IMG/VR virus record: IMGVR_UViG_3300044701_000569
Location: 186,001 to 250,000 of that record
Length of the DNA: 64,000 bases
Direction: 5' to 3' (one strand)
Below the pieces are notes generated by a model. That model was not told the DNA's origin, ran no database searches, and saw only the letters and a list, made by a program, of their open reading frames with translations. The position numbers were made by a program, and so were the translations under genes. Positions 19,082 to 34,701 of this stretch are shown one piece after another; within the stretch, counting starts at the first letter, position 1, and the number at the start of each line of letters is the position of its first letter.

Positions 19082-19954
19082 TTAGGTGCCCCACGCATTT
19101 CCGAATATGTCGACATGGAGACGGGGCGTATATCTCCATCCCCGCTCCATTGCGAGGTTTGCGACTCGCTTGGTGTTTTGCTGGTAAAGCCCATCTTTTC
19201 CACCAACTGGCATAACATAGACTGGACATTCGATACCAGCACTGCGATATTCTCTAACAGCCTTTTCAACTTCGTCCACGTCCACTTCATCAGCAACAAC
19301 AAACTTGAAGTAAATGTCACTGTTAGGTACGGTACTATAAGACAGAGCAATATCAGGTTTGATAGCATCATTCCAAGACTCCCCCGAAACAGAAAGCTTC
19401 GGTGAGCAGGACCAAGTAATTCTGAGTTTGCTCTGTTGACAGAGATAGTCTCTAAAATCAGGTCTGAGAGCTTGTGTAGTATTTGTTTCAAAAGTAACAT
19501 TTTTTAAATCTTTCATTCTAGGATGTTCAAACAATTCTTGATAAAACTTTTGCCATCCTAGCAAAGGTTCTCCGCCTGTGATAATAAAATGAATGTCCTG
19601 CCCATTGTCCATCGTCCACTTGCCCGTAGGAGTAAGACTCAACAAGTGATCTACAACTTCGTCTACAGTCTTATCCTGCATAAACTTTTTAAATTCAGGA
19701 TAGATGCTAGCATAGGTATCACAGCCTGTGCCTATGATAGGTAAGTCTTTAAACTCTACAATAGATTCAAGACGTCCACTGTCTAGTAGTTCTTTTACTT
19801 CCGGATTATACTTATCGTTAACAGTTCCTCTAGGTAAACCAAAGTTCATACAACGAAAGTTACAACCAAAAGTACGTAGGAACACACTAGGTACTCCTAC
19901 GTAACGACCTTCACCTTGAATAGAATAAAATGCTTCGCTATATCTTAATTTCAC
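19082..19954 (-). CDS. queE: 7-carboxy-7-deazaguanine synthase (radical SAM)
   Basis: EAFYSIQGEG...SVFLRTFGCNFRC...CDT, TGGEP, ETN, SPKL, RLH; next to folE. Confidence 0.85.
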   Translation of the reverse strand: MKLRYSEAFYSIQGEGRYVGVPSVFLRTFGCNFRCMNFGLPRGTVNDKYNPEVKELLDSGRLESIVEFKDLPIIGTGCDTYASIYPEFKKFMQDKTVDEVVDHLLSLTPTGKWTMDNGQDIHFIITGGEPLLGWQKFYQELFEHPRMKDLKNVTFETNTTQALRPDFRDYLCQQSKLRITWSCSPKLSVSGESWNDAIKPDIALSYSTVPNSDIYFKFVVADEVDVDEVEKAVREYRSAGIECPVYVMPVGGKDGLYQQNTKRVANLAMERGWRYTPRLHVDIFGNAWGT

Positions 19955-20325
19955 TTCAAGTTCTCCAATGTAGCGATCCTAGCAATCTTTTCGCCAAAAT
20001 CTTCATCCTTACCTATAATATACAGCGTAGATTCACTTCTGTCAATCTTACGATCCATCCTACGAAATTCAACAATAGTACCACCAATAGCAGGATAGAC
20101 CCTAAAATTTAATTTAGGGTCTTGTTCCGGAGTGTCTCTCTCAAGACTAATTGGTCCATCGCTTGTACGTTGTACACGATTTGTTCTGGAAGCATTTTCC
20201 CAATCTTCCCTAACCCAACGTAGTATCATACGTTTAAACCAATTTATCTTTCTAGGCTTGTTGTAACCTTCGTCAAGTTGTGATGGCATTTTTGCTTCTT
20301 CAACTGCGTACATTGATGTTCCCAT
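19951..20325 (-). CDS. Hypothetical phage protein
   Basis: 124 aa ORF between folE and queE. Confidence 0.65.
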   Translation of the reverse strand: MGTSMYAVEEAKMPSQLDEGYNKPRKINWFKRMILRWVREDWENASRTNRVQRTSDGPISLERDTPEQDPKLNFRVYPAIGGTIVEFRRMDRKIDRSESTLYIIGKDEDFGEKIARIATLENLK

Positions 20326-20327
20326 AA

Positions 20328-21026
20328 TTATCGTGGTGCAAATTCTTGCTGTAGTTTAATGTTGTCAAAAAACTCTTTCTTAGTACCTGGGTCATCTTTA
20401 AATGCACCTTTGAGTACTGTAGTCTGAGTTAATGAACTATGTGCCATAATGCCACGATTCTCACAGCATCCGTGTGTGGCTTGAATATATACAGCTACAT
20501 TTTCTGAGTCGGTAACTCGCATGATTTCGCGGGCAATATCATTGCAGAGCTCTTCTTGAAGCGTCCCGCGCCTGGCACACCACTGTGCGATACGAGTGTA
20601 TTTGGAAAGCCCAATGAGTTTGTTGGCGGCAATAATCCCGATATATGCCACGCCACTAACGGGCTGATGATGATGACTACACATACTACGAAGCTCACTA
20701 CGGACAACCAGCATACCTTCGTAGCGGTCCTCCGAATCGTTGGGAAATGCTGTTGCGTCTGGTGCTGGGTCATATCTTCCTGCCATAATTTCATTCACGT
20801 ACATCTTAGCAAGACGCCTTGCGGTGCCTCGACTGTTAGGATCTGTATGTCTGTCAATAACTAGTGCGTCTAGCACACCTTCAAACTTTTCAGTAATTTC
20901 ATCAATTAACTGATCTCGTTCACTAGGAGCAAGCCATTGGCTAATGTTGTCACCAGCCCAAAAGCGACCGCCTTCATTCTTAATTCTATTTCTAATTACC
21001 TGTGATAGGTTCTTTTCTTGAGTCAT
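20328..21026 (-). CDS. folE: GTP cyclohydrolase I
   Basis: SMCSHH, IGLSKYTR, RGTLQEEL, HGCCENRG. Confidence 0.95.
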   Translation of the reverse strand: MTQEKNLSQVIRNRIKNEGGRFWAGDNISQWLAPSERDQLIDEITEKFEGVLDALVIDRHTDPNSRGTARRLAKMYVNEIMAGRYDPAPDATAFPNDSEDRYEGMLVVRSELRSMCSHHHQPVSGVAYIGIIAANKLIGLSKYTRIAQWCARRGTLQEELCNDIAREIMRVTDSENVAVYIQATHGCCENRGIMAHSSLTQTTVLKGAFKDDPGTKKEFFDNIKLQQEFAPR

Positions 21027-21079
21027 TATTTCTTTCTCCGATGTTGAGGCAGAGGATTGCCGTATATACTATATGTTAT

Positions 21080-21108
21080 AGTATACACTTTATTTAGGTT
21101 TTTGTCAA
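21080..21108 (-). promoter_or_regulatory. Sigma70-like promoter with TAAATA in the spacer, upstream of folE
   Basis: TTGACA-17-TATACT. Confidence 0.75.
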
Positions 21109-21110
21109 GA

Positions 21111-21314
21111 TTAAACACTAAAATATTTTTTTAGCATTTCTAACTTGTCGCTGTACTCTGCCATAATTGCCAATTCCTTTTCAATAGCATCCATTATATC
21201 AGTATGCTCTGGAATAGCAATTGGATTGTTAAGCATTACTTCAACATTCATCTTGTGCTTTAGAATATGCGACTCAAAATGAACTTTGGATGTTTCTAAA
21301 ATTTCTTTACGCAT
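21111..21314 (-). CDS. Hypothetical phage protein
   Basis: 67 aa ORF with GGAG SD. Confidence 0.7.
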   Translation of the reverse strand: MRKEILETSKVHFESHILKHKMNVEVMLNNPIAIPEHTDIMDAIEKELAIMAEYSDKLEMLKKYFSV

Positions 21315-21660
21315 GAGGCTCTCCTTTTCTATAGTTGCCTTTTTCTGGGATAACGTGTCTTACGCCTCCCCTTGGATCTTCCATGTCACCCTTGCGACGT
21401 GGTATTAAGTGTATATGAGGATACATAACAGTTTGTCCTGCAGCCTCCCCTACATTTTGACCAATGTTGAACGCATCGCAGTATCCGCGATCAACCCAAT
21501 CATAGCCCCACTTGTAAGCAGCTTCCCAGCATTTTACCATGTGTTGCCAATCTTCAACTTTTGGTACAAAAAGTACATGTCCTTCTGTAACAGGAAATCC
21601 GTCCTTATAGACGGTAAAATCTCTAGTATCTAATAAAACATTAGTCCAAGGTCCTGGCAT
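21307..21660 (-). CDS. HIT family nucleotide hydrolase
   Basis: FPVTEGHVLFVP, AGQTVMYPHIHLIPR (first His of the triad is Tyr). Confidence 0.85.
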   Translation of the reverse strand: MPGPWTNVLLDTRDFTVYKDGFPVTEGHVLFVPKVEDWQHMVKCWEAAYKWGYDWVDRGYCDAFNIGQNVGEAAGQTVMYPHIHLIPRRKGDMEDPRGGVRHVIPEKGNYRKGEPHA

Positions 21661-21669
21661 ATCTTACTC

Positions 21670-22266
21670 TCATATAAAATTAAAATTTATAACGGTCCTA
21701 ACATCACTACTAGGGGGCGTACTAGCATGATAATGTCTTCCGTCAAATATTAAACATCTTCCTTTTTTAGGAGATATTTTAGTTAAAACTTTCTGTTCGT
21801 TAGGATTTAAATGTTGATTTATATCACTGTCGTCGTTCATTTTATCAAAAATAACAGTATCGCCGTCGCTGTCGTTTACATAATAGATACACACAAGATG
21901 CATTCCTGGGCGATCAACATGAGGTCTATCAACTTTCTGATTGTTAATTGGAGAAGACATAAACCCTCTTATAAGAGTGATGTCGTTTAATTTTATATTT
22001 GCAGCATCAACAGCATTATACAACACAGAAGTTACTAGGTGATTAGTAGTACCATAATTTTTTTCTTTGTCAAAAATCATACTACCCCAGCCAAATCTCT
22101 TTTTTAATGGAACACCAACTTTTAAAAACTCATTAATCTGCAAATCAGAAAAAGTTATATCAGACTGAAACCACCAGGGTTGTTTGTTGTGCATATACTC
22201 TTCAATTTGATTTTGAAAAGTTGTAGATATAGCATTATCAACGACAACGAAGTCATCTAGTATCAT
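21670..22266 (-). CDS. Fe(II)/2OG oxygenase
   Basis: PHVD, IYYVNDSDGDT, PKKGR..IFDG..YHAS, RTVINFN. Confidence 0.85.
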   Translation of the reverse strand: MILDDFVVVDNAISTTFQNQIEEYMHNKQPWWFQSDITFSDLQINEFLKVGVPLKKRFGWGSMIFDKEKNYGTTNHLVTSVLYNAVDAANIKLNDITLIRGFMSSPINNQKVDRPHVDRPGMHLVCIYYVNDSDGDTVIFDKMNDDSDINQHLNPNEQKVLTKISPKKGRCLIFDGRHYHASTPPSSDVRTVINFNFI

Positions 22267-22513
22267 TTTTCTTTTTCTCGTAGTCGTATATTAACATAGA
22301 CAAGTCGTCTAATTTATCATTAGTTTCAAAAACATGAGTGGCTACACTGCCAACAATATCCATATGATACTTGCTAGGATAATGACGCAGGCAGTAATAT
22401 GCTTGTTTACGAATTGCTTTAGGAACACGAGGCGTCTTCTTAGGATCAAGAAGATCGTGTAAAAATTTTCCAGTGTTTATTACAGAACGATATCTTTCGT
22501 CAGGCAGCGTCAT
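22253..22513 (-). CDS. Hypothetical protein (MTLPDER...LRHYP type)
   Basis: ORF ATGA-coupled to the PRTase, with GGAG SD. Confidence 0.65.
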   Translation of the reverse strand: MTLPDERYRSVINTGKFLHDLLDPKKTPRVPKAIRKQAYYCLRHYPSKYHMDIVGSVATHVFETNDKLDDLSMLIYDYEKKKNDTR

Positions 22514-23052
22514 TTTTTCTCCCAAGGATATACTAGCCAAACATCATTTTCAATTTTATTAACCTCATGCGAGTAGTATGAGATATTGTCAAAGTTACTG
22601 GACAGATTGTTTGTTAAAACTGCGAATCGTACATTACCGCCAAATACATTACTCCAACCAGCATCTTCGTTGGGTAAACAACTACTGCGCCAATCCTTTT
22701 CAATCCATTCCAGTGTTGCACCTGTATCGTTAATGTCGTCAACAATTAGTATGTTTGATCTACGTGCAGGATCCCACCTGCTTTTGTAAAGTTCTTGTTC
22801 TTCAAGGGCAACGCATCCAAACGCATCTTCTGCCATCCAGCAGTTACTTTCACACTCTCCACCGTCACGCAGACTAACCTTTAGCGATTCGCAACGTACA
22901 TCAATCATATGAGAAATAATAGTAGCAGGAATGTTTCCGCCACGAGTTAAGCCAACAATGTAATCAGGACGCCAAAGGTCTTTGTACATCTGCAGAACAA
23001 TGTCAGTACACATCTGTTCTACATCTTGCCAAGAGTAGAAATGTTTATTCAT
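22510..23052 (-). CDS. Phosphoribosyltransferase (xanthine/guanine PRT-like)
   Basis: IVGLTRGG, ILIVDDINDTGAT PRPP motif, WLVYPWE. Confidence 0.9.
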   Translation of the reverse strand: MNKHFYSWQDVEQMCTDIVLQMYKDLWRPDYIVGLTRGGNIPATIISHMIDVRCESLKVSLRDGGECESNCWMAEDAFGCVALEEQELYKSRWDPARRSNILIVDDINDTGATLEWIEKDWRSSCLPNEDAGWSNVFGGNVRFAVLTNNLSSNFDNISYYSHEVNKIENDVWLVYPWEKK

Positions 23053-23324: not shown

Positions 23325-23773
23325 TTTGAGTCCTTAATGGCGTCAAAGGTTTTATATTTTTCTAAAGCACGTTCGTAAGCATCTTTAAGTTCTTTGAGCT
23401 TAGGATACTTCTCTTCCATGCGAATGTCACGCTTTAATAATAACAGAGCATCACGCATTTCGTCAAGCTCTTTTAAGATATCTCTACCATTAACTTCTAA
23501 TGGTGTAGTAATTTTTGTTACAGACGGTCCTATACTAACTGTAGTATCTTGAGTTACGGAGTTTAAAGAGTAAACTGGACTTGATACCCATGAAACTCCA
23601 TTAAGACCGGGTGTAGTTACCAGTCCACTACCGCCACCTCCGCCGCCCACTGCTGAAATGTTAACACCACTAACAGAAGGAACAGGTCCATAGCCCTGTA
23701 AGAAACCACCAACTGTAGCGCCAGCGGTTAACTCAGTTATTAGCGGAGTATTTTTCTCTAAGGTATCGCTCAT
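23321..23773 (-). CDS. Hypothetical protein, G/S/T-rich N-terminus
   Basis: 150 aa ORF; C-terminal EEKYPKLKEL helix. Confidence 0.65.
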   Translation of the reverse strand: MSDTLEKNTPLITELTAGATVGGFLQGYGPVPSVSGVNISAVGGGGGGSGLVTTPGLNGVSWVSSPVYSLNSVTQDTTVSIGPSVTKITTPLEVNGRDILKELDEMRDALLLLKRDIRMEEKYPKLKELKDAYERALEKYKTFDAIKDSK

Positions 23774-24173
23774 GCTGTATCCATTCTCCGTTTACATCAA
23801 AACCCCAGTCTTTTTGCTTAGGACCAGGCATAAACAAGGTCCAACAATCAACCCCAGGTTCTAATTCTACTCTATGATAACTGTTTGCCCTGCAGGTTCT
23901 AAAATGTCCTGCACCTCTCCAAAAACGACCTTCTGGAGTAGTTTCCCAATAGCCACCTTTAAGGATCAGCGTAGCATAAGGCCAAGGATGATCATGAAGA
24001 TCGTCAGGATCACCTTTTAGAAACTTGTGTAGAAAGACGTTAAACGGAAATCGTTCTCTTTCTTTTAAGAAAAGATAATAGCGTTCAAGGTATGGCTCAG
24101 AACTTAGTCTGTCCATAATGATACGCTTGCGGTCAGTTTTGTCTAGCAGTTTAAAAAAGAGACGTTTGATCAT
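23733..24173 (-). CDS. Cupin-like protein
   Basis: LHKF...DDLHDHPW...GGYWE...HRVEL...WTLF. Confidence 0.7.
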   Translation of the reverse strand: MIKRLFFKLLDKTDRKRIIMDRLSSEPYLERYYLFLKERERFPFNVFLHKFLKGDPDDLHDHPWPYATLILKGGYWETTPEGRFWRGAGHFRTCRANSYHRVELEPGVDCWTLFMPGPKQKDWGFDVNGEWIQHERYLREKYSANN

Positions 24174-24525
24174 CTTTCATTTTACCTTTCCAGTCTTGTT
24201 CGACCATTTTGTAAACAGTTTTAAAATTTTCAAATGCTTTAGCTAGTCCGGGATATTCTTCACACATCTTTTCTACAGTATCAAAGTCTGGAAAGCAGTC
24301 CTTCCATTCAGTTCTATCAAATACAAATGTACTGCTGCTAAGACCGTCTAGATTAATTGCTGTATCAGTTGATAAAATATAATCTGTGCCGGATAGCGTA
24401 ATAGTTTCTATACCACCTGCCATAGTTGACACTGTAAAAACATCTTGAGCTGCATAGTTGCTATCAACAGTAATAGTTACGTCGCCTGTGGATGTAAAAA
24501 CAAATTCATCGTCTTTATTTTCCAT
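24151..24525 (-). CDS. Hypothetical protein
   Basis: 124 aa ORF; T/S-rich N-terminus, EEYPGLAKAF. Confidence 0.65.
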   Translation of the reverse strand: MENKDDEFVFTSTGDVTITVDSNYAAQDVFTVSTMAGGIETITLSGTDYILSTDTAINLDGLSSSTFVFDRTEWKDCFPDFDTVEKMCEEYPGLAKAFENFKTVYKMVEQDWKGKMKDDQTSLF

Positions 24526-25618
24526 TCTTTATCGCCTCATAGAGATCCTTACCATTAAAGAATTCTTTCTTTAACTTAGCGACCTGCTTATCTAGACTAA
24601 CTAGAAAGTCTTCGTAGTGTTCCATATATTCTACTATTTGAGCTACTATCTTAGCTCTATTGTCTTTATAAGACAGGAAGTCAGTAGTCCAGTCAGACGG
24701 ATATTTAAACTCTGGTAGAGACATCTCGCTGTAACTAAGCCTATCAGGAACCATAGGAATAGCATCTACTAGTGCGCCTTCATACCAACTGATGCCTAAT
24801 GTTTCCTGCAAGTTAGCACTGAACACTAACTTAGCTTGTCCTAGTAAGTTATGATATTCGTTCTTTGTTAAACTGCGTTCTTGACAGATTACAAATTCGT
24901 ACTGTGGAAGTTGTTCTGCTAGATCTCTAAAAATATCAACCTGCTTTTCTGGAGCAATACGATGCGGGAAAAGAATTAAATCTTTCTTCTCCATACCTTT
25001 ATATTGACTTAGACTGTTTGCAAGATACTCCATGGGCCAACCAACACGTACAATCTTCCCATCGTTGTATCGATCTTCCCATTCCTCATGATACCAGGGA
25101 TTTTCTAATGGGATGCCATCATGTAGCAGTTCATCAAACAACATCTTTACATGAAACTCTGTTGCAAAAAAGTTTTGATCATAACAGTGAAACATGCTCT
25201 TCTCAGCATTCCTGACCCAGCTTGCTGGGCCTATAAGTCTTCCTAGGAAGTCTGCCTCATCATAAGAACCAGCATGCCATAAACCACCAATTCGAATGTC
25301 GATGCCCAAGAGCTCAGCCATGTACCGAAGCTGTATAACCGTGGGGTTCCAAGCATCTGTGTAAAGAAAATAGTCGCCATTTTTAATTTCTCCTTTGCAG
25401 AACATTTCACCAATCTGTTCGAGCTGTTTGCTCTTATACACATTGGTACCGCCAAAATTGAGAAAAGCCCCAGGCGTAGTAGCCTGAGGCGTTTCACCAC
25501 CACTAATTACAACAACTTTTTCATTCGTAGCATGGCGAAGCTGTTGTGGAAGATAGTCCTTCCACTGTTTAGTGTAGCGTGTATCTACTGCTTCAATATC
25601 TACGATGTATATAGTCAT
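24515..25618 (-). CDS. GT-B fold glycosyltransferase (GT4-like)
   Basis: FPHRIAPEKQ, ETLGISWYEG (E-x7-E donor-binding motif), PDRLSYSE. Confidence 0.8.
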   Translation of the reverse strand: MTIYIVDIEAVDTRYTKQWKDYLPQQLRHATNEKVVVISGGETPQATTPGAFLNFGGTNVYKSKQLEQIGEMFCKGEIKNGDYFLYTDAWNPTVIQLRYMAELLGIDIRIGGLWHAGSYDEADFLGRLIGPASWVRNAEKSMFHCYDQNFFATEFHVKMLFDELLHDGIPLENPWYHEEWEDRYNDGKIVRVGWPMEYLANSLSQYKGMEKKDLILFPHRIAPEKQVDIFRDLAEQLPQYEFVICQERSLTKNEYHNLLGQAKLVFSANLQETLGISWYEGALVDAIPMVPDRLSYSEMSLPEFKYPSDWTTDFLSYKDNRAKIVAQIVEYMEHYEDFLVSLDKQVAKLKKEFFNGKDLYEAIKNGK

Positions 25619-25821
25619 TGGTGTGTATTTTTCTCAAAACGTCGTGTGTTCTTAAATTTCGAACGTTGCCATCCGCGATAGCGTTCGTATGCCTGCCAAT
25701 TAGGATCTTCCTTATTATAAAGAGCCCGTTCGTTGAATACCTTACCTTCAAAGCGGCAATAATCGCGATAACTATCGAGATCATTAAATACCTTGTTGAT
25801 AACGGGATTAGTGATAGACAT
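25615..25821 (-). CDS. Hypothetical protein
   Basis: 68 aa ORF with AAGGA upstream. Confidence 0.65.
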   Translation of the reverse strand: MSITNPVINKVFNDLDSYRDYCRFEGKVFNERALYNKEDPNWQAYERYRGWQRSKFKNTRRFEKNTHQ

Positions 25822-25835: not shown

Positions 25836-26228
25836 TTAAATCAAGTTGTAAGGATAATAGATAAGTGAGCCATTTTCTCCATCTTCGGAGACTTCAATTT
25901 CTACAAATCGGCCCGGAAACTTTGTAGAAATTTCCTTATACAAGTCATCCGAAATCATTTCGCAAGACTTGTGATTAAGTTCTAGTGTACCTTGGTTATA
26001 TAGATTTTCAAGCCAACGCTTGAATTGAATGAATTCAATATCTCGGTCATCATGGAAAACTTCGATACGAACCTTAAAGTGAAAGATATGTCGATGTGGA
26101 GTAGCTAGAAAACTCACATCATATTCATCACCTGTTGCTAGCTTAGGATCTACGCTTGCGGCAGGATAGCAGTGGATACCTTCTTTACGGAAAGTAACCC
26201 AAACACTCTTTGAAATAGGTTGACTCAT
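25836..26228 (-). CDS. QueD/PTPS-like T-fold enzyme
   Basis: EGIHCYP, HRHIFHFKV, DRDIEFIQFK, SCEM, EDGENG; lies in the folE/queE/TGT neighbourhood. Confidence 0.7.
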   Translation of the reverse strand: MSQPISKSVWVTFRKEGIHCYPAASVDPKLATGDEYDVSFLATPHRHIFHFKVRIEVFHDDRDIEFIQFKRWLENLYNQGTLELNHKSCEMISDDLYKEISTKFPGRFVEIEVSEDGENGSLIYYPYNLI

Positions 26229-26256: not shown

Positions 26257-26285
26257 AGTATATGTTCACTTAACTACCTTGTCAA
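26257..26285 (-). promoter_or_regulatory. Sigma70-like promoter
   Basis: TTGACA-17-TATACT. Confidence 0.7.
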
Positions 26286-28533: not shown

Positions 28534-29276
28534 TATTTGCTCTGTGCTGGAAGGATGTAATCGTACTTGGCCAATCCGCTATCTACGGAAATCATCATAG
28601 CACCTTGGTCTGAAATGCTTACAGTTGACTCACCGTCTAAATTTAAAATAGCCTGCATTTGACTTACTGGCCAACTCCATGCATGCTTCAAACTACCCGA
28701 TACGTTGTTTTGGAATACAAACTTACCAGCATGTGTGCTAGCATCACCAAAGTAGAATACTAGATCAGTTACTCCGCCTGTTACTTCAGTCTTAACTGTA
28801 AAGATTGGCTCTTCAGAGTGTGCTGTACTCATTAGCTTCATACGCTGAATAGCTGCCATTGATGGCTTAAATTGAACATCCCAGCTAGCACCTTTGAACT
28901 TAACAGTCTTGAGCTTTTCTTCAATAATTGCCTTGTTCATAAAACGATAGTCGTTTTCAAAGTCGCCTGTTGCATTTTCAAAGTGAATATGCGTAGGAAT
29001 AGTTTCACCGTTCCTATCCGCACTAACAACTTCAATCTTTGCATTATCCTTGTACTCCGGATTCTTTAAGTGAAGTGCTAGCTTGTCTAGGTTAGGCATA
29101 CCAAACGTACCTGTAAATTCAGTTACTGCCTTGTGTGTTGACGATGTAAGAATAACGGAACGATCTTCTGCCATTGCGTCAATAGTAGTTGCGCCATTTT
29201 CGCTAGTAACCTTAACTAGGGATAAGAAGCCTAGTGAATGTGTATGAGCTACGATGTCTTGTAAAATGTCTTTCAT
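28533..29276 (-). CDS. DNA polymerase sliding clamp (gp45/PCNA-like)
   Basis: 247 aa alpha/beta ORF ending YDYILPA, near polB; a clamp loader is also in the window. Confidence 0.6.
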   Translation of the reverse strand: MKDILQDIVAHTHSLGFLSLVKVTSENGATTIDAMAEDRSVILTSSTHKAVTEFTGTFGMPNLDKLALHLKNPEYKDNAKIEVVSADRNGETIPTHIHFENATGDFENDYRFMNKAIIEEKLKTVKFKGASWDVQFKPSMAAIQRMKLMSTAHSEEPIFTVKTEVTGGVTDLVFYFGDASTHAGKFVFQNNVSGSLKHAWSWPVSQMQAILNLDGESTVSISDQGAMMISVDSGLAKYDYILPAQSK

Positions 29277-30025
29277 GGGTTTTCTCCTGTAATATATTGT
29301 AGTTTAACGTCTATGCCTTTATTTGTCAAGAAGTTTTCTACGGTGTATTTAGGTTTGAAGCCTAAACTGGTTAAAAATTTTATATCTGCCTGAGTGTGTG
29401 TTCTTTCGTGGGGTGTATATTCTTTAATTTTAAGATTTGGTGCGATGCTAGGGATATAGATACTAGTGCCAGTTCCAACATCTACAACACCTTTTAAGTC
29501 AGTATTTTCAATAAGGTATAGGAAAGCAGAACAAACATCTTCCAAATGAATAAAATCTCTATAATGCTTAGTTGCATATTCTAATCCTCCATTTAGTAGT
29601 TTGTCAAAAAACATGTCTTTACGGGGTGTGTCGCTGTATACAGTGTGTAGTCTAATTCCTAATGAATTAGAATGTTTGGCACCTATATATTCAACTAATA
29701 ATTTTGTTGCGGCATACGGGTTACGTTCGGGTTCATACGCAGAACTAGAACTAGCATAGATAATTCTAGTATTCTTAAATACTTCAAAGATTCGTCTACT
29801 ACCTTCTACGTTGTTATACCAATATGCACTAGGATTCTTAAGGCTTTGACGAACGCCGCTCTTTCCTGCTAGATGTATTACTAGATCAACTTCGTAGTCT
29901 AAACTACAGGTATTGATATCTTTGCCGTCTGCTAGATCAATGCCATATACTACATGATCTTTTTCCAAGACTTCTTTTAGTCTTGAGCCAACAAATCCTT
30001 TATGGCCTGTTAACAATATACGCAT
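29273..30025 (-). CDS. NAD-dependent epimerase/dehydratase
   Basis: TGHKGFVG, HLAG, ASSS, YAATK (YxxxK), RDFIHLED. Confidence 0.92.
   Translation of the reverse strand: MRILLTGHKGFVGSRLKEVLEKDHVVYGIDLADGKDINTCSLDYEVDLVIHLAGKSGVRQSLKNPSAYWYNNVEGSRRIFEVFKNTRIIYASSSSAYEPERNPYAATKLLVEYIGAKHSNSLGIRLHTVYSDTPRKDMFFDKLLNGGLEYATKHYRDFIHLEDVCSAFLYLIENTDLKGVVDVGTGTSIYIPSIAPNLKIKEYTPHERTHTQADIKFLTSLGFKPKYTVENFLTNKGIDVKLQYITGENP
29301..29329 (-). promoter_or_regulatory. Sigma70-like promoter for the clamp-TGT unit, inside the epimerase 3' end
   Basis: TTGACA-17-TAAACT, followed by AGGAG. Confidence 0.65.
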
Positions 30026-30026
30026 A

Positions 30027-30776
30027 TTATTTTCTTATTTTATTATTATAGTTTATTGCTTCTTGCATAACACTTAACTCAACACCTTCTAGTTCTGCGG
30101 TGTGCAGTAAAGCAGCAGTGTCTTTAGGAAAACAATGTCCTCCCCAACCTCTTGCAGAAGTAACATCAGTGTGACTAGCACCAATCCTTAGATCTTGACC
30201 CACACCAGCAGCAACATTTTTATAATTAACTCCGAATGCTTGGCATAGGTCATAAACTTGATTAAAGAAACTTACCTTGGTGGCTAGAAATGCATTTCTA
30301 AAATATTTTACAAGTATTAACTCTTCAGGCTGCATATGAACTGAAATTACCTTAGGAAATACTTTTCTAAAGGTAGCTTCCCAAAATGTAATATCATCTC
30401 CTGCATAGTACATATACTGTGTATTTCTAAAATCTCTTTCAGCAGTTTCTGCTCTAAGAAATTCTGGACTATATGTTAAGCTACGTTCTGAAAATGTTTC
30501 TTTAAGATAAAGCCAACCTTCTAAACTAATAGTACTGCGTATTAGAATTGGTATATCTTTAGGTGTATCTGTAATAACTTCATATACATTGTTTATGTTG
30601 CAAGCACCTGAAGGATGCTGAGGTGTATTAACACATATAATAACGGCATCAGTGGGATTGTCTTTAATTTTATCAGTACTAATTTTAGGATCTACTATAT
30701 TGATAGTAAAATGTTGCTTCATTAATTCAACATGAGACTTACCAACAAATCCGTATCCTGCTATTGTGATGTTCAT
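30027..30776 (-). CDS. UDP-glucose/GDP-mannose dehydrogenase family (lacks C-terminal domain)
   Basis: GYGFVG, ICVNTP, RST, SPEFLR, KYFRNAFLATKVSFFN, GGHCFPKD. Confidence 0.9.
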   Translation of the reverse strand: MNITIAGYGFVGKSHVELMKQHFTINIVDPKISTDKIKDNPTDAVIICVNTPQHPSGACNINNVYEVITDTPKDIPILIRSTISLEGWLYLKETFSERSLTYSPEFLRAETAERDFRNTQYMYYAGDDITFWEATFRKVFPKVISVHMQPEELILVKYFRNAFLATKVSFFNQVYDLCQAFGVNYKNVAAGVGQDLRIGASHTDVTSARGWGGHCFPKDTAALLHTAELEGVELSVMQEAINYNNKIRK

Positions 30777-31480
30777 AGTGCTATACCTTTTGATTGTAAT
30801 TCTCGAAGAGTTTTAAAAGTTTCTCTCCAGGATTTTACATAGAATGTATTTGTAACAACTTTTGCAATAGGGTAATCATTACCATTTATATCACATCTAT
30901 CACCGAAAAAATAAATGTTACTAATATCTTCAAAGTCTTTTAAAATTTGAGATTTATCTAAACCTTTTGGAAAAATATCAATTCCTGTTTCTCCGCCTAC
31001 TTTTGCTTCAAGTTTTAGAAACAATGAATTAAAATCTTTTGCTATTTTAATTCTTTCATCGGAACTATTATCCCATTTAACATATTCTGCTCTTTGCAGT
31101 TTATTGGCACCTCTACCAACAATGCTAAAATTACACATACCGGGACGATGTTCAAAATGAGTTCCTGTTCTAACTTTAAAATCGCTAGTCTTTAAATATT
31201 CTATCAAAAACGTTTCTGCTGCGTCTGGTAAATGCCATTCATTTGTATGAGTGTTAATACCTGACTCCCAGATATCATTCCCTGAACAGTTATATACTTT
31301 TCTAACAGTTTCACATATTTTTAAACCTAATTGCTCAACCGTTTTAGGATAATCACTACCAGTTACTAGATAGACTTCATTAGCAAAACAAAAGTCTAAA
31401 AAGTAAGACTGAAACATTCCGTCAATGCTGCTTCTACTTTCAGTCAAAGTTCCGTCTACGTCAAAAATAAATTGATTCAT
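30773..31480 (-). CDS. HAD-IIB phosphomannomutase-like
   Basis: FDVDGTLT, VTGSD, EHRPGMCNFSIVGR, GGETGIDIFP, FFGD...GNDY. Confidence 0.85.
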   Translation of the reverse strand: MNQFIFDVDGTLTESRSSIDGMFQSYFLDFCFANEVYLVTGSDYPKTVEQLGLKICETVRKVYNCSGNDIWESGINTHTNEWHLPDAAETFLIEYLKTSDFKVRTGTHFEHRPGMCNFSIVGRGANKLQRAEYVKWDNSSDERIKIAKDFNSLFLKLEAKVGGETGIDIFPKGLDKSQILKDFEDISNIYFFGDRCDINGNDYPIAKVVTNTFYVKSWRETFKTLRELQSKGIAL

Positions 31481-31902
31481 TGTGAATTTTTCATTTCCCT
31501 ATCTACTACTCTTTTTCTTAAATCACTAGAGCTGAATCGATGTTCTCGTTTATTGAAATAAAGTTGTATTCCTCTTTTCTTACAGATATCCTTACCTGTA
31601 AAATCTTTATCTCTATATTCTTCACCTAAAATCCTAACGTCAATATGATACATTGATAATATATCTTCAAGATCACCTTCTGATGAATAAGGAATTATTT
31701 CATCTACATAACCAACTGCTTTAAGTTGAGTATATCTTTCAACTACAGTTTGAATTGGTGAATTTTTAGTTGGCCTATCTAAGCTAGGATCAAACTGTAA
31801 TCCACATATCAAATAATCACACTGCTCCTTAGCTTCTCTAAGCATTTGAACATGACCTGCATGTAATAGGTCAAAAGTTGAACAAGTAAATCCTACTTTC
31901 AT
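31477..31902 (-). CDS. Glycerol-3-phosphate cytidylyltransferase-like (TagD)
   Basis: TFDLLHAGH, ERYTQL, RFSSSDLR. Confidence 0.88.
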   Translation of the reverse strand: MKVGFTCSTFDLLHAGHVQMLREAKEQCDYLICGLQFDPSLDRPTKNSPIQTVVERYTQLKAVGYVDEIIPYSSEGDLEDILSMYHIDVRILGEEYRDKDFTGKDICKKRGIQLYFNKREHRFSSSDLRKRVVDREMKNSQ

Positions 31903-32009
31903 AGTTTCATTTTATCTGCTAAATTTCTCAGCGCCGCGATAATTTCCTCAATTACATTAAGGTCACGATCTTGGTCTGTGTCTATTTCTATTTCTATTTT
32001 AATTTTCAT
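31899..32009 (-). CDS. Small hypothetical protein (36 aa, not in ORF track)
   Basis: MKIKIEIEIDTDQDRDLNVIEEIIAALRNLADKMKL; GGAG upstream; fills the gap with an ATGA overlap. Confidence 0.6.
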   Translation of the reverse strand: MKIKIEIEIDTDQDRDLNVIEEIIAALRNLADKMKL

Positions 32010-32010
32010 T

Positions 32011-34701
32011 TTATTCTCCGAAGTCAAATAAACTTGAGAAAGTATTGTGCTGCTTTGTATCTTCTAAACTATAGTTTAGAACTCCAATCAAGTTATCCAA
32101 CTTATTGTCAATAATTGTTTCTTCCATAGCACTATCATCAAATGGAAGTTCTTTGAACCAATCAGGCAATCTTAGTTCATCAACTGGGTATGCAACTGAA
32201 GTATATCCTAACGGATTGTCCTTTACTTTACATACAATTACCTTCATACCGTCAACAATTTCCATTGAGTATCTATCACCGTTCATACGTTTTAGTGTAT
32301 TCCAGTTGATACTTGCACGGACATGTCCAGGCATGTTAGCTTTGCCTTTCTTTTGCTCTTCTCTCTGATAGTGACCAATTTTGTTTGCTCTCTTTGGTGA
32401 ACCTTTTTCCCATCCTGGACGTTCTTTGAACACCTGTCTAAAAGCAGTAATACGTTCAATAACTTCCTTTTCTTCCTTACCGGTCAATACCATTAGAAGT
32501 ACTTCACTTAGAAACTCCTGCATAAACACAGGAGTATCTGATCGACGAAGATCTAAACCCATAGCTTTTACTTTGCCTGGTTTGCCATCCACATCTTTTC
32601 TAGTACCTTCTTGATCGTATACTAATGCTGCATAGCGTTTCTTAGTAATATACAATCCGCTTTCTGCTACAATTTCTCTGCCTGCTGCAATAACATCTGC
32701 ACGACTCTTAGGACAGTGAAACGCCTTGCCCATAAATTCTGGGAACGTCTTATTAGCTTCTTCACTTACTTGATCGTAAAGCATTGTGATATTTTCTTTA
32801 CTCCAAGGTATACGTCCTGCATCAATGTCTTCTTTGAGTGTTGTATAAGCACTAAAGTATACAGAGTCAGTATCACCATAGATAACAGCGTTACCTACGT
32901 GATCATATGTGCCTGTAATGATTTCATTTACCTTAGAAGCCATGTGCTTGGCAATTTGACGTCCTGTGAGCGTAGTTGATTGTCCAATGCGTTTATCAAA
33001 GAACCTGCAACCAGGGTTAAGAATAGCACCATACAAACTGTTAAGGTTAATCTTTTTAACAAGCTGACGCTTATCCCAGAACGCAATTTCTGTATCATTA
33101 CCGGCCTCCTGAGCCTTCTTTTTCATAGCCTGGAGTTCTTTACGTTCAGCGTACCAACGCTTTAGTAGTCCAGGGATAACACCTTCATATTCTGTTGTAA
33201 AAATAGTTCCGTTGGCACTGAGCATCCAAGGCATGTGACTGTCAAAGATTAGCTTGAATATTTCAGCACCACTTAGTACGTCACTTCTGCCATCTTCCCA
33301 GTCAACTGTAATTGCAACATCTTTACGTTGGGTAATTACTGCTTCGTATTCTTCAGAACCAAACCTACCTTCCCAGCTATTAGCAAAGCTCATCTTTTTA
33401 AGATTTGTGTCTTCGTGGATACGTGCATCAGTAAGTGTAGAACGTAACTGCCCAACGATTGTCTCTGGTGCCATGTTTAGCGCACGAATTACGGATGGAT
33501 ACAGACTGTTCAAGTCCATTGACGCAATCCATTTATGTAATCCTACTTTTGGATAAGCAACATACGCACCTGCGGCTTGAGTATTCTCGTCATCCTGTTT
33601 GGGACGATTAGGAACCTGTAGTCCTCTGTTGTGAGCTTCATTGATAATAGCCTGTTCTGTAACAGCTACAGCACCCATTGTAGTTTGTAGTAGTACAGTA
33701 TTTGCATGAGCAAGTTCGTTTGATAAATCAATGAACCTTAGCTTCTTATCAAGTTTGTCCAGTAGTGCAACGTCCTGTCTGTTGTATTCAATGAACGTTC
33801 TAAAATCGTTGTTGTACAACTGATCCAGTGTGCCTTCATAAACAGTCTTGTTTTCACCAATCTCCATTTCGCCAATGGCATCTAGTCGATAGCTGTGACG
33901 TTCTTCATAAGTATACTTTCGATACAGTTCAAGACTGTCTAAGTGTACACGACCTACAAAGTCAAATGTTTCAGCAGTCTTGCCATACTTTTCGTATTCA
34001 CGTTTCTTAGGTAATTGACCCCACAAGCAGAATCTGCGTGTATCATCCTTGCTTAACATCCTAGCAACACGATTTACAGTATAAGGAACGTCATAGCCTT
34101 CTGAGTTCCAACCGCTTACAATGTCTGCATCCTCAATCAAGTCAAGAAATGTTTTAAGCATTTCTCGCTCGCCGTTGCCATCCTTGTCATTCTCAAAGAG
34201 AATAATGTTGTCACCCCATTCCGTACACATTTCTCTAGCTTGATCCATAGTCAGTCCTTTGGGTGGAACTGCTAGAGTAATCAATGCATTGAGCCACTGT
34301 AGGCATACAGTGATAGCTGTAATGGGCATGAATGGGTCTGAAGGATCAGCGAATCCTCGTTCCGGATCAAAGTCCGTCTCAATATCCCAGAATGCAATGT
34401 TTAGCTTTGGTGCATCCTGATTGAGATAGTTCTCACTGAGACATTGGAATATAGGGTTGATATCGCTTTCATACAACTTCTTACTGTTGTTGATAGCTAG
34501 TTCTTTGCGGAAGTCTTTAGTGTTTTTACAAACAATACGACTTAGCTGAGTACCATACACACTCTTATATTTGCCCTTGGGGTCTTCATAGTAAAAGGTG
34601 TATTTTACTGGGTGTTCTGTAAAGCGTCTTTTACCGTCTTTACGTTCAACGATTCTGATGATATCAGAATCTCTGTCAAAAATTGCATCTACGTAACTCA
34701 A
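32011..34701 (-). CDS. Family B DNA polymerase (T4 gp43-like)
   Basis: Exo motifs DIET, GWNSEGYD, YNRQD; pol motifs DLNSLYPS, KINLNSLYG, YGDTDS, KKRY. TTG start with GGAGG. Confidence 0.97.
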   Translation of the reverse strand: MSYVDAIFDRDSDIIRIVERKDGKRRFTEHPVKYTFYYEDPKGKYKSVYGTQLSRIVCKNTKDFRKELAINNSKKLYESDINPIFQCLSENYLNQDAPKLNIAFWDIETDFDPERGFADPSDPFMPITAITVCLQWLNALITLAVPPKGLTMDQAREMCTEWGDNIILFENDKDGNGEREMLKTFLDLIEDADIVSGWNSEGYDVPYTVNRVARMLSKDDTRRFCLWGQLPKKREYEKYGKTAETFDFVGRVHLDSLELYRKYTYEERHSYRLDAIGEMEIGENKTVYEGTLDQLYNNDFRTFIEYNRQDVALLDKLDKKLRFIDLSNELAHANTVLLQTTMGAVAVTEQAIINEAHNRGLQVPNRPKQDDENTQAAGAYVAYPKVGLHKWIASMDLNSLYPSVIRALNMAPETIVGQLRSTLTDARIHEDTNLKKMSFANSWEGRFGSEEYEAVITQRKDVAITVDWEDGRSDVLSGAEIFKLIFDSHMPWMLSANGTIFTTEYEGVIPGLLKRWYAERKELQAMKKKAQEAGNDTEIAFWDKRQLVKKINLNSLYGAILNPGCRFFDKRIGQSTTLTGRQIAKHMASKVNEIITGTYDHVGNAVIYGDTDSVYFSAYTTLKEDIDAGRIPWSKENITMLYDQVSEEANKTFPEFMGKAFHCPKSRADVIAAGREIVAESGLYITKKRYAALVYDQEGTRKDVDGKPGKVKAMGLDLRRSDTPVFMQEFLSEVLLMVLTGKEEKEVIERITAFRQVFKERPGWEKGSPKRANKIGHYQREEQKKGKANMPGHVRASINWNTLKRMNGDRYSMEIVDGMKVIVCKVKDNPLGYTSVAYPVDELRLPDWFKELPFDDSAMEETIIDNKLDNLIGVLNYSLEDTKQHNTFSSLFDFGE

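Follow-up and report, generated by a model that had tools for sequence, protein, structure and literature searches.

An uncultured 357-kb jumbo phage carries a 7-deazaguanine DNA-modification module of the DpdL type, accompanied by a phage-specific glycosyltransferase (GT) that stays with the deazaguanine genes in every relative that could be tested. This predicts, but does not prove, a sugar-decorated deazaguanine not yet reported in DNA. The window analysed here is a 64,000-nucleotide stretch, positions 186,001 to 250,000 of IMG/VR record IMGVR_UViG_3300044701_000569, and all coordinates refer to it. The genes listed in the original prediction are all present and co-oriented on the minus strand, so that the observation itself is confirmed. 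Its interpretation, that the phage inserts 7-carboxy-7-deazaguanine (CDG) or a derivative into its DNA and glycosylates it with a self-made sugar, is only partly supported. The module and its flanks comprise the following elements.

17580-18566, minus: RNase H / 5'-3' exonuclease flanking the module
19082-19954, minus: QueE (CDG synthase, radical SAM), with a GTG start
19951-20325, minus: 124-aa ORF of unknown function, variable among relatives
20328-21026, minus: FolE, GTP cyclohydrolase I
21307-21660, minus: HIT-family nucleotide hydrolase/transferase
21670-22266, minus: 2OG-Fe(II) oxygenase, a sporadic accessory gene
22510-23052, minus: type I phosphoribosyltransferase (PRTase), xanthine-guanine PRTase (Gpt)-like
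23733-24173, minus: cupin-type protein, a variable accessory gene
24515-25618, minus: glycosyltransferase, predicted GT-B fold, GT4-like (retaining-type), dedicated to deazaguanine clusters
25615-25821, minus: 68-aa basic protein conserved between DpdL and GT
25836-26228, minus: DpdL (QueD-like T-fold; proposed CDG decarboxylase)
26266-26784, minus: 172-aa conserved protein of unknown function associated with the module
26781-27032, minus: DUF465 small protein overlapping the 3' end of the DpdA-like gene
26974-28533, minus: divergent DpdA-type guanine transglycosylase (predicted TGT fold) with an acidic C-terminal tail
28533-29276, minus: sliding clamp
29273-30025, minus: short-chain NDP-sugar epimerase/dehydratase (optional sugar cassette)
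30027-30776, minus: compact NDP-sugar dehydrogenase-like protein (rare accessory)
30773-31480, minus: eukaryote-type phosphomannomutase (PMM), HAD-IIB (optional sugar cassette)
31477-31902, minus: HIGH-type sugar-phosphate nucleotidyltransferase, RfaE domain II / TagD-like (optional sugar cassette)
32011-34701, minus: family B DNA polymerase (PolB)

Family searches identified most of the listed genes, FolE and QueE among them. FolE matches Pfam PF01227 (1.3e-39). QueE matches PHROG 2076, "QueE-like", over its full length (1.5e-52), with a weak Pfam Radical_SAM hit and a cysteine pattern that reads C31-x3-C35-x42-C78. The T-fold gene, in contrast, had been taken for QueD-like and requires correction. 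It is QueD-like but carries the motif L-x3-H-R-H-x-F at residues 41-49, the signature defined for DpdL (PMC10516641), and no CxxxHGH QueD motif occurs in any frame of the window. In tblastn comparisons it is 32% identical to the founding DpdL of phage phiST, 55% to that of ACP17, 52% to PA5oct and 67% to Phosso, and it matches phrog_17812 (2.4e-34). No true QueD lies in the window, and no queC, queF or gat-queC was detected in the block or elsewhere in the window.

The 519-aa protein proposed to be a TGT has no Pfam, PHROG or PDB sequence hit. It carries LLGDSGGFQ, and its AF2 model (pLDDT 89.7) matches only tRNA-guanine transglycosylases among the top 14 PDB hits in Foldseek (E 4e-6). Residues D106/S107/G109, D151 and D299 are invariant and align to the TGT DSGGYQ, FD and QG motifs, so that the catalytic Asp residues are retained, while there are no conserved Zn-site cysteines. 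Alignment with hhalign gave 96% to the DpdA of ACP17, 95% to X1, 92% to BCSR5 and 54% to phiST DpdA3, with none to 9g DpdA1. The protein is a remote homologue of the DpdAs of phages ACP17, X1 and BCSR5. Its C-terminal tail shares a short motif with the C-terminus of PolB, which reads ...NTFSSLFDFGE.

The GT has no Pfam hit, but its AF2 model (pLDDT 84.3) folds as GT-B, closest to GT4/GT5 enzymes. The top Foldseek PDB hits are glycogen synthase, BshA (TM 0.67), MshA, PglA and GlgM, and a profile search hits GT4 enzymes in PDB. The EX7E motif (E272/E280) and residues R220/K225 are invariant. T4 DNA glucosyltransferases are not among the top 50 structural matches in either library searched, and the closest neighbours, BshA and MshA, act on small molecules rather than DNA.

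The remaining genes differ in how closely they follow the module. The PRTase (Pfam Pribosyltran, 1.5e-07; PRPP motif ILIVDDINDTGATL) has xanthine PRTase as its best NCBIfam hit, below the cut-off, and is present in 26/26 long close relatives and 21/34 GT-centred loci with both flanks, as well as in PA5oct-like phage and the related loci L089, L091 and L103. The HIT gene (Pfam 3.6e-09) is present in 19/26 long relatives. It lies directly next to the PRTase gene in three MAG-derived relatives (L099-L101), whereas in the window the 2OG oxygenase and a 95-aa ORF lie between them. The cupin matches phrog_4786, "cysteine dioxygenase" (5.5e-39), and occurs in 16/26 long relatives, while the 2OG oxygenase (Pfam 2OG-FeII_Oxy_3, 6e-07) occurs in 1 of 26. 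The 124-aa ORF has no Pfam or PHROG hit and was found in only 3 of 26 long relatives, although a homologue sits between QueD and QueE in locus L102. The 68-aa protein (pI 9.6) has no family hit but is present in nearly all close relatives, where the DUF465 protein (Pfam, 7.9e-09) is likewise conserved. The 172-aa protein has no Pfam, PHROG, NCBIfam or PDB-profile hit. Homologues lie next to FolE/DpdA in ACP17 (33%), in locus L090 (37%) and elsewhere in PA5oct genomes (45%), and it is present in 22/34 GT-centred loci.

The sliding clamp lies inside the block, between the DpdA-like gene and the epimerase. It has no Pfam hit but is 38% identical (E 9e-47) to the PA5oct-like protein annotated as PCNA and 31% to the Phosso sliding clamp. 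Between the clamp and PolB (Pfam DNA_pol_B, 9e-38) lie the sugar-nucleotide genes. Among 66 loci covering clamp to PolB, the epimerase (Pfam Epimerase, 4e-24) is present in 46, PMM (Pfam 1.1e-26) in 49 and the nucleotidyltransferase (Pfam CTP_transf_like, 5.5e-15) in 55; the latter scores 72 bits to NCBIfam rfaE_dom_II and 63 bits to glycerol-3-P cytidylyltransferase, both below cut-off. The 249-aa dehydrogenase matches the UDPG_MGDP_dh central domain (2e-25) but lacks the N- and C-terminal parts, covering only positions 73-296 of the 413-position NCBIfam model. It is present in 2/66 relatives, both with the same 247-aa length.

Co-occurrence had been named beforehand as a test of the GT and of the sugar genes, and the two gave opposite results. 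The GT follows the DpdA-like gene in 49/49 DpdA-centred loci with enough flank, and DpdL is present in 77/77 GT-centred loci. In the 34 of those with both flanks, FolE and a DpdA are each present in 34/34 and QueE in 32/34. All 22 cultured-phage records with a GT homologue place it in a deazaguanine cluster, including a Gat-QueC type with a PIG-L deacetylase and a sugar oxidoreductase, and the only 5 hits in 185,579 prokaryotic species genomes are phage-like MAG contigs with the same module. The sugar-nucleotide genes, in contrast, segregate independently of the module. The epimerase, PMM and nucleotidyltransferase form an optional cassette absent together in a sub-lineage that keeps the GT, and 8 of 66 loci lack all the sugar-nucleotide genes, with the GT still present in the 7 whose sequence reaches its position. 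The dehydrogenase, 2OG oxygenase and cupin are sporadic. The GT passes this test and belongs to the module, whereas the proposal of a self-made sugar fails it and is not supported.

These findings suggest a model of a replication-linked DNA hypermodification module, to which a probability of about 0.5 is assigned. FolE would make dihydroneopterin triphosphate from GTP, a QueD encoded elsewhere in the 357-kb genome or supplied by the host would make 6-carboxy-tetrahydropterin, and QueE would make CDG. DpdL would then convert CDG to the base that is inserted, proposed in the literature to be 7-deazaguanine (DG); by analogy with phiST, the base predicted here is DG or another DpdL product rather than CDG. 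The divergent DpdA-type enzyme, probably tethered to the sliding clamp by its polymerase-like C-terminal peptide, would exchange that base for guanine in phage DNA, and the GT would add a sugar either in DNA or on the base before insertion. In this view the donor is a host NDP-sugar, although in most relatives the optional three-gene cassette (phosphomutase, nucleotidyltransferase, epimerase) could instead supply an NDP-sugar, and the PRTase most simply recycles released guanine into GMP/GTP, the pathway's own precursor. The result would be restriction- and CRISPR-resistant DNA. The analysis establishes the gene identities, folds, catalytic motifs and co-occurrence, while the chemistry of DpdL, the acceptor and donor of the GT, the presence of the sugar in DNA, clamp tethering and the role of the PRTase are inferred. 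DpdL activity has never been demonstrated, and its expression with DpdA in E. coli gave no dDG. If DpdL yields DG, there is no hydroxyl or carboxyl at C7 to glycosylate and an N- or C-glycoside has to be assumed. There is chemical precedent in the huimycin GT HuiG, which puts GlcNAc on a nitrogen of a free 7-deazapurine base. In addition, canonical ThyA, DHFR and dCMP deaminase in the window argue against an hmC/hmU acceptor.

An alternative, considered unlikely, is that the phage makes plain 2'-deoxy-7-deazaguanosine (dDG, with some dCDG), as in Cellulophaga phage phiST, while the GT and sugar genes remodel host surface polysaccharide or LPS to block superinfection, or glycosylate virion proteins. 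Jumbo phages often carry clusters of nucleotidyltransferase, sugar-modifying enzymes and GTases, which have been interpreted as surface-polysaccharide modification (PMC7824862). The optional cassette sits in a variable slot between clamp and PolB, and DG offers no obvious acceptor group. However, the GT, unlike the cassette, never separates from the deazaguanine genes in the loci counted above, lies directly beside DpdA or DpdL in at least six independent lineages, and belongs to a family essentially absent from cellular genomes. A surface-remodelling GT would not be expected to track DpdL this tightly.

Less likely still, the GT may act on the free base or a nucleotide intermediate, in the manner of HuiG, BshA or MshA. 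The sugar would be carried into DNA by a DpdA with an enlarged pocket, or would be a transient handle removed before or after insertion, in which case the final DNA may carry no sugar. The small-molecule substrates of the closest structural relatives and of HuiG favor this reading, as does the Xanthomonas PhiXhv cluster, which pairs the GT with a PIG-L deacetylase and a GFO/MocA oxidoreductase, as small-molecule thiol pathways do. Eukaryotic TGT shows that bulky 7-substituents can be inserted by this fold. There is no direct evidence for either order of steps, and because the DNA glucosyltransferases of T-even phages are also GT-B enzymes, the fold does not discriminate.

A nucleotide-level route is improbable. 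Here the PRTase would couple CDG or DG to PRPP, as TubE does in tubercidin biosynthesis, and the deaza-GMP would be processed (DpdL, HIT, kinases, reductase) to a dNTP incorporated by the polymerase, leaving the DpdA-like enzyme a secondary or proofreading role. The PRTase recurs in the module, L091 adds an IMPDH/GMP-reductase-family gene next to it, L089 and phiST carry AAA_18 kinase-like genes, and the tubercidin pathway uses CDG, a PRTase, a decarboxylase and a GMP reductase. Against this, a DpdA is present in all 34 fully covered loci and the PRTase in only 21, the published view is that all known phage deazaguanines are inserted post-replicatively by DpdA, and guanine salvage explains a Gpt-like enzyme more simply. 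Finally, a tRNA-modifying (queuosine-type) role of the TGT-like enzyme, with the cluster as an auxiliary tRNA-modification pathway, is suggested by the TGT fold but is very improbable given the absence of a Pfam TGT hit and of conserved Zn-site cysteines, the position of the gene between clamp and replication genes, the polymerase-like C-terminal motif, the homology to phage DpdAs and the restriction-resistant DNA of the syntenic PA5oct.

A comparison with known systems places the module among phage deazaguanine clusters. No paper in the library searched reports a glycosylated deazaguanine in DNA, in agreement with the original prediction, and such a base is a reasonable, unpublished prediction. 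Phage phiST has DpdL and DpdA3 but no GT, and its DNA contains plain dDG and dCDG; DpdL systems therefore work without a GT, and about 12 of 29 cultured-phage DpdL records lack it. The same gene order as in the window recurs in hundreds of metagenomic contigs and in several cultured phage lineages, which indicates that the arrangement is not chance. The same DpdA, GT and DpdL genes cluster in ACP17, X1, BCSR5 and L089, while in Phosso GT and DpdL are adjacent but the DpdA-like gene lies far away in the genome. The block is syntenic with Pseudomonas jumbo phage PA5oct, whose restriction-resistant DNA is consistent with a modified G of unidentified structure. PA5oct-like phage share the CTP-transferase-like gene, PolB, PCNA, TGT-like gene, GT, DpdL, epimerase domain, PRTase, QueE and RNase H, and the flanking RNase H (Pfam 5_3_exonuc_N, 1.8e-18), 51% identical to its PA5oct-like counterpart, marks the same boundary of the module as in PA5oct.

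The region belongs to IMG/VR contig IMGVR_UViG_3300044701_000569, a jumbo phage of 357,559 bp, and almost all of its genes lie on the minus strand. Read in the direction of transcription, from high to low coordinates on that strand, the block and its flank contain the following.

32011-34701, PolB
31477-31902, a HIGH-type sugar-phosphate nucleotidyltransferase
30773-31480, a eukaryote-type phosphomannomutase (PMM)
30027-30776, a compact NDP-sugar dehydrogenase-like protein
29273-30025, a short SDR epimerase
28533-29276, the sliding clamp
26974-28533, a 519-aa TGT-like protein
26781-27032, a DUF465 protein
26266-26784, a conserved 172-aa protein
25836-26228, a QueD-like T-fold protein of 130 aa
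25615-25821, a 68-aa basic protein
24515-25618, a 367-aa predicted glycosyltransferase (GT), followed by several small ORFs
23733-24173, a cupin
22510-23052, a PRTase
21670-22266, a 2OG oxygenase
21307-21660, HIT
20328-21026, FolE
19951-20325, a 124-aa ORF
19082-19954, a QueE-like protein (QueE below)
17580-18566, RNase H, lying with a 152-aa protein beyond the block

The genes listed in the original prediction are therefore all present, and the observation on which it was built holds. A megablast search of the block against 50,697 phage genomes returned nothing. The 124-aa ORF was at first taken for the QueD-like gene, but it has no family hit and no His motif and is variable among relatives, and the T-fold gene is that at 25836-26228. 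The dehydrogenase-like protein, at 247-249 aa, lacks the N-terminal Rossmann start and the C-terminal domain; this length is conserved at 46-47% identity in two relatives (locus L048, 7753-8496, and locus L056, 4265-5008), so it is a compact variant rather than a fresh truncation. In L056 both the 172-aa gene and the GT are split into two ORFs (8777-9342 and 10805-11978), which could reflect frameshifts, assembly errors or decay. A profile of the 172-aa protein searched against PDB gave no meaningful hit. Isoelectric points are all acidic and say nothing about DNA binding.

The 519-aa protein shows no Pfam, PHROG or PDB sequence match at E <= 0.01 to 10, the Pfam TGT model PF01702 included, although LLGDSGGFQ is plain to read. 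Its family is very large in metagenomes, with at least 7,252 clusters at 90% identity and 958 representatives at 50%. In an alignment of 44 diverse members down to 26% identity, D106, S107, G109, D151, H266 and D299 are invariant, and a profile of the family aligns the catalytic positions to the DSGGYQ, FD and QQG motifs of Zymomonas TGT, though only with weak E-values of about 0.7-1; the assignment of D299 (in 'FDCAS') as the equivalent of the nucleophile rests on inspection. The Zn-binding CxCxxC...H site of canonical TGTs is not conserved, since no cysteine is invariant in this alignment and only H266 is retained. The AlphaFold model is confident (pLDDT 89.7), and its 14 best Foldseek matches in PDB are all bacterial, archaeal or eukaryotic tRNA-guanine transglycosylases (E 4e-6 to 2e-3, probability 0.99-1.0). 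Membership is thus at the superfamily or remote level. Profile comparisons with phage enzymes gave the values listed here.

hhalign probability of the window transglycosylase family against phage proteins
ACP17 424-aa protein: 96%
X1 (annotated TGT): 95%
BCSR5: 92%
phiST DpdA3 (CGPG_00065, gp042): 54%, E 1e-4, over 86 columns
9g DpdA1: none

The ACP17 protein is read, from its position in the cluster, as the dpdA mentioned for that phage in PMC10516641. The window protein is classed as a divergent DpdA-type enzyme, near DpdA3, of which it may be a sister clade, or forming a new subfamily.

The T-fold gene is DpdL and not QueD. The protein reads ...FLATPHRHIFHF..., and DpdL, the proposed CDG decarboxylase, was defined by exactly this change of the QueD motif CxxxHGH to LxxxHRHxF (PMC10516641). 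It is 32% identical to phiST DpdL, 55% to the ACP17 protein, 52% to PA5oct and 67% to Phosso, and H19, H45, H47, H59, E65, E90 and E115, which include the retained His and Glu ligands, are invariant across 11 homologues including phiST DpdL. A profile-profile comparison of DpdL with QueD alignments gave only 23% probability with the small alignments used, and membership therefore rests on the motif and on homology to phiST DpdL. A literature search on DpdL alone returned mostly unrelated acronyms.

No CxxxHGH motif exists in any frame of the 64-kb window, and bona fide QueD queries find nothing in it. QueD is present in the genomes of ACP17, X1, Phosso, BCSR5 and PA5oct, where cultured relatives encode it far from the module, and inside the module of one metagenomic relative (L102). 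It is therefore probably elsewhere in this genome or borrowed from the host. DpdA, FolE and QueE are present, and no QueC, QueF or Gat-QueC was found in the window. A PP-loop ORF at 3774-4517, with SGGADS and a C-terminal CGKCFWCKER, was considered as a hidden QueC and rejected, as it has no Pfam QueC hit, a blastp E of only 0.74 to a QueC and no tblastn match in cultured phages. It lies in a low-GC (32-34%) island at 627-4517 together with three radical-SAM/SPASM ORFs (657-1655 on the plus strand; 1636-2526 and 2519-3850 on the minus strand), and an Asp/Asn beta-hydroxylase-like cupin lies at 7699-8355. The QueE gene starts at GTG and its product matches the PHROG QueE-like family at 1.5e-52, while Pfam Radical_SAM scores only 18 bits; its cluster cysteines read C31-x3-C35-x42-C78, a 42-residue insertion where canonical QueE has CX3CX2C. 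Orthologues are annotated QueE in PA5oct-like phage, ACP17, X1 and BCSR5. A 362-aa protein with a pterin-4a-carbinolamine dehydratase domain (Pfam 1.6e-16) lies about 3 kb beyond PolB at 37405-38493, and this pterin-handling enzyme near a FolE-dependent pathway could be related or coincidental. A 363-aa protein at 38780-39871 has weak ATP-sulfurylase and CTP_transf_like hits and may be another nucleotidyltransferase. Further away are chaperone sets described for 'group 2.2' jumbo phages, namely a MoxR AAA+ ATPase paired with a DUF2201 metallopeptidase-VWA protein (13583-16045) and a 748-aa ClpB-like AAA+ protein next to a DnaJ (41806-44881).

The predicted glycosyltransferase has no Pfam (Glycos_transf_1 or Glyco_trans_4), PHROG or NCBIfam hit, although a 21%-identical homologue in the distant relative L091 carries PF00534. 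Its model (pLDDT 84.3) is a two-Rossmann GT-B fold closest to retaining GT4/GT5 enzymes: of 160 PDB matches at E <= 1e-3, the best 50 are all GT-B enzymes, among them BshA (TM 0.67), MshA, PglA, GlgM and glycogen synthases. The C-terminal EX7E motif (E272-x7-E280) and the phosphate-binding residues R220 and K225 are invariant in five homologues of 26-47% identity, and a family profile hits GT4 chains in PDB at E 0.01-0.3. T4 glucosyltransferases are not among the best 50 matches in either structure library.

The closest cultured synteny is with PA5oct-like Pseudomonas jumbo phages, where the order is CTP-transferase-like, PolB, PCNA, TGT-like, GT, DpdL, epimerase domain, PRTase, QueE, RNase H. 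The orders elsewhere are as follows.

Gene order in other phages and loci
ACP17: QueD, FolE, 172-aa homologue, DpdA, GT, DpdL, QueE
Phosso: PolB, clamp, ..., DpdL, GT, FolE, ..., QueE
X1: FolE, ..., GT, TGT, DpdL, QueE
BCSR5: DpdL, ..., GT, TGT-like, ..., QueE
L089 (metagenomic locus): clamp, DpdL, TGT-like, GT, FolE, PRTase, QueE

All 22 cultured-phage records with a homologue of this GT have it in a deazaguanine cluster. These include five Xanthomonas/Erwinia phages in which the neighbours are a Gat-QueC (34% identical to that of phage 9g, with a Pfam QueC hit at 4e-49), a PIG-L-type deacetylase and a GFO/MocA oxidoreductase. In Xanthomonas phage PhiXhv-15 (PV764602.1, 98820-113752) the distant GT homologue sits in the order GNAT, ..., Gat-QueC, PIG-L deacetylase, GT, GFO/MocA oxidoreductase, the gene annotated 'GlmS' being really Gat-QueC, which suggests an amino-sugar decoration of an archaeosine-type base in these phages. 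Scans of IMG/VR with the X1 and PhiXhv GTs found no relatives, and a nine-sequence GT alignment was too divergent to seed a scan. A scan of one genome for each of 185,579 prokaryotic species found only five homologues, all on phage-like MAG contigs with the same module.

Among IMG/VR loci centred on the DpdA-like gene, the GT is present in 49 of 49 with at least 3.5 kb downstream. Among 77 loci centred on the GT (34-76% identical to the window GT), DpdL is present in 77. In the 34 of those with at least 6 kb on both sides, DpdL, FolE and a DpdA are each present in 34, QueE in 32, the 172-aa protein in 22, PRTase in 21, epimerase in 19, PMM in 13, nucleotidyltransferase in 13 and dehydrogenase in 4. 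In 66 loci covering clamp to PolB, eight lack every sugar-nucleotide gene, and the seven of these with enough sequence still have the GT. The converse does not hold, as about 12 of 29 cultured DpdL records, including phiST, lack the GT, and some lineages of the DpdA-like family pair it with QueC or a methyltransferase instead. In one such lineage (locus L083, 10001-15340), the DpdA-like protein, 45% identical, is followed by a 285-aa unknown protein and a QueC instead of GT and DpdL; a TnpB (Cas12f1-like) gene lies nearby and the PolB is split by an intein. The GT is thus an add-on specific to deazaguanine systems, mostly downstream of DpdL, while the sugar-nucleotide genes are a separable, optional cassette.

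The DpdA-like proteins end in a low-confidence, disordered acidic tail carrying a ..(F/L)(D/N/S)xLF(D/E/G).. motif that matches the C-terminus of the DNA polymerase of the same phage (in the window, 26974-27120 for the tail and 32011-32050 for the PolB C-terminus; also at loci L001, L082, L088 and L098 of the comparison).

C-terminal sequences of DpdA-like proteins and of PolB
Window: DpdA tail SSTYFDALFEVE; PolB NTFSSLFDFGE
PA5oct-like: DpdA tail NSFNSLFDVD; PolB HFDSLFGW
ACP17: DpdA tail TTLDELFE; PolB PSLDDLFE
9g: DpdA tail RLQDLFDE

Twenty-four of 44 family tails carry the motif, against a mean of 6.5 (maximum 16) in 1,000 shuffles. The motif resembles the clamp-binding peptides of T4 and RB69, in which the polymerase C-terminal peptide binds the sliding clamp. 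The dpdA gene is usually next to the clamp gene, as in the window, PA5oct, 9g and the loci L083, L085 and L090. A clamp-tethered, replication-coupled base exchange is inferred from this, which favours DNA over tRNA as substrate and could explain high replacement levels.

Experimental work on related phages provides an anchor for the interpretation. A deazaguanine synthesis and incorporation system was noted in PA5oct by Iyer et al. (PMC7824862). PA5oct DNA resists cleavage at G-containing restriction sites, and the phage is restricted by END nucleases that target hypermodified DNA, one of which acts only on phages with modified G; the base was not identified in that study (PMC12191111). phiST, with DpdL but no GT, contains dDG and dCDG. 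DpdL plus DpdA from phiST or ACP17 gave no dDG in E. coli, and the authors suggested that unknown enzymes may be required (PMC10516641). No paper found in the literature searched describes a sugar on a deazaguanine in DNA.

These results present a model in which FolE and the QueE-like protein supply CDG, with QueD from elsewhere, and a TGT-fold enzyme with intact catalytic aspartates is present. This much is shown by homology, whereas the conversion of CDG by DpdL into the inserted base, proposed to be 7-deazaguanine, is inferred from the family literature, the exchange of G in DNA is supported only indirectly by clamp adjacency, the polymerase-like tail and the modified G of syntenic PA5oct, and the transfer of a sugar to the deazaguanine by the GT4-type enzyme is inferred from gene linkage. 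The claim of the original prediction, that the phage inserts CDG or a derivative and then glycosylates it with a self-made sugar, is in part supported. A probability of about 0.5 is placed on a sugar being added to the deazaguanine at some stage. Because the GT occurs with both DpdL-type and Gat-QueC-type clusters, an acceptor position common to all 7-deazaguanines, such as the exocyclic N2, is attractive. The 2OG oxygenase and the cupin were considered as enzymes that might create a hydroxyl acceptor and were rejected as a general solution, being present in 1 of 26 and 16 of 26 long relatives, respectively. The donor could be a host NDP-sugar; where present, PMM, the nucleotidyltransferase and the epimerase form a coherent route from a sugar-6-phosphate to an NDP-sugar.

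The PRTase resembles xanthine-guanine PRTase and carries a PRPP motif, and the preferred reading is that it would salvage the guanine released by base exchange back into GTP, the substrate of the pathway. A TubE-like reaction on CDG is the alternative. Distant relatives (L091 5469-7005 and L089 7337-7777; L086 8302-8799) add an IMPDH/GMP-reductase-family gene next to the PRTase (L091) or an AAA_18/APS-kinase-like gene (L089, also in phiST), which is reminiscent of nucleotide-level deazapurine pathways such as tubercidin. Of the tubercidin/toyocamycin-type set of PRTase, GMP reductase and UbiD decarboxylase or adenylosuccinate enzymes without DpdA, only the PRTase is present in the window, where a DpdA is also present, and a PF00478-family gene occurs only in L091. 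A hydroxymethyl-pyrimidine acceptor is unlikely, because dCMP deaminase, thymidylate synthase (333 bits) and DHFR, together at 51908-54343, look canonical.

A broader reading, held more tentatively, is that a widespread clade of phages carries a sugar-bearing 7-deazaguanine in virion DNA. The clade would include abundant uncultured aquatic jumbo phages, PA5oct-like Pseudomonas phages, ACP17, Phosso, X1/BUDD and BCSR5, plus a Gat-QueC variant in Xanthomonas PhiXhv-type phages. The sugar would be added by a phage-specific GT4 clade as an N-glycoside on the exocyclic amine (HuiG-like) or a C-glycoside on the pyrrole ring, and the base would be inserted by a DpdA that rides the sliding clamp through a polymerase-like C-terminal peptide. 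This would be the first glycosylated purine analogue in any DNA and the first replisome-tethered base-exchange enzyme. Known deazaguanine DNA modifications number eight and none carries a sugar, while all known DNA glycosylations sit on hydroxymethyl-pyrimidines or base J. A glycosylated deazaguanine would be a new class of DNA base, bearing on restriction, CRISPR and type IV/END nuclease evasion, on the nanopore and PCR behaviour of environmental phage DNA, and on enzyme tools. Given the size of the DpdA-like family in metagenomes, a large share of aquatic jumbo-phage DNA may be affected. The GT, the 172-aa protein and the PRTase are also concrete candidates for the unknown enzymes invoked when DpdL plus DpdA failed to give dDG. 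The question is directly testable, because PA5oct, ACP17, Phosso and X1 are in culture.

A comparison with known systems places the module. In T-even phages, hmC is decorated by GT-B enzymes (alpha- and beta-glucosyltransferases, with arabinosylation in RB69) as an anti-restriction measure, and RB69 also encodes enzymes for the sugar donor. The acceptor there is the hydroxymethyl of hmC, and no second ThyA-like hydroxymethylase was found among the window ORFs scanned. In galactosyl- and mannosyl-queuosine of eukaryotic tRNA, cited in the original prediction, a sugar is added to a 7-deazaguanine derivative after a TGT has inserted it into a nucleic acid; the acceptor is the cyclopentenediol hydroxyl of queuosine, which this pathway cannot make because QueC, QueF, QueA and QueG are absent. 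Among the actinomycete 7-deazapurine metabolites (huimycin/dapiramicin and tubercidin), made by secondary-metabolite clusters without DpdA, huimycin biosynthesis provides a precedent, in which the GT HuiG transfers GlcNAc from UDP-GlcNAc to a nitrogen of a free 7-deazapurine, reportedly at the 2-amino group, and the tubercidin pathway combines CDG with a PF00156 PRTase (TubE), a decarboxylase and a GMP reductase.

The DpdA1/DpdA2 systems for preQ0, dG+ and dADG (phages 9g, CAjan and Iggy; bacterial Dpd) share a base-exchange enzyme of the TGT superfamily fed by FolE, QueD and QueE, encoded next to the clamp and polymerase and ending in the same C-terminal ..DLF motif. They use QueC or Gat-QueC, however, have no DpdL, and have no GT except in the Gat-QueC clusters of PhiXhv-type phages found here; the window protein has no detectable profile similarity to 9g DpdA1. 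The DpdA3/DpdL system of Cellulophaga phage phiST and relatives (Cui/Hutinet et al., NAR 2023, PMC10516641) shares FolE, QueE, a DpdL with the LxxxHRHxF motif and a distant TGT-fold DpdA, all next to the polymerase genes and without QueC. It has no GT, no Gpt-like PRTase and no 172-aa protein, but MazG and an AAA_18 protein instead, and its DpdA3 relates only weakly to the window enzyme. ACP17, named in that paper as a DpdL phage, shares DpdL, the GT and the 172-aa protein with the window; the GT partner is not mentioned there, 'glycosyl' having no occurrence in the text. PA5oct (Wroclawvirus), in which the TGT-like protein is 32%, the GT 41% and DpdL 52% identical, lacks the PMM and dehydrogenase genes and has its 172-aa homologue and QueD elsewhere in the genome. 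Its TGT-like and GT genes are mostly annotated as hypothetical, and the chemical identity of its base is unpublished.

The deazaguanine part of the module belongs with the DpdA/DpdL systems already described, and PA5oct had been flagged as early as 2021. The glycosylated base itself remains a prediction. New here are the recognition of a dedicated, phage-restricted GT4 clade, together with a 172-aa protein and a Gpt-like PRTase, as recurrent partners, the extent of this module in environmental jumbo phages, and the polymerase-like tail on DpdA.
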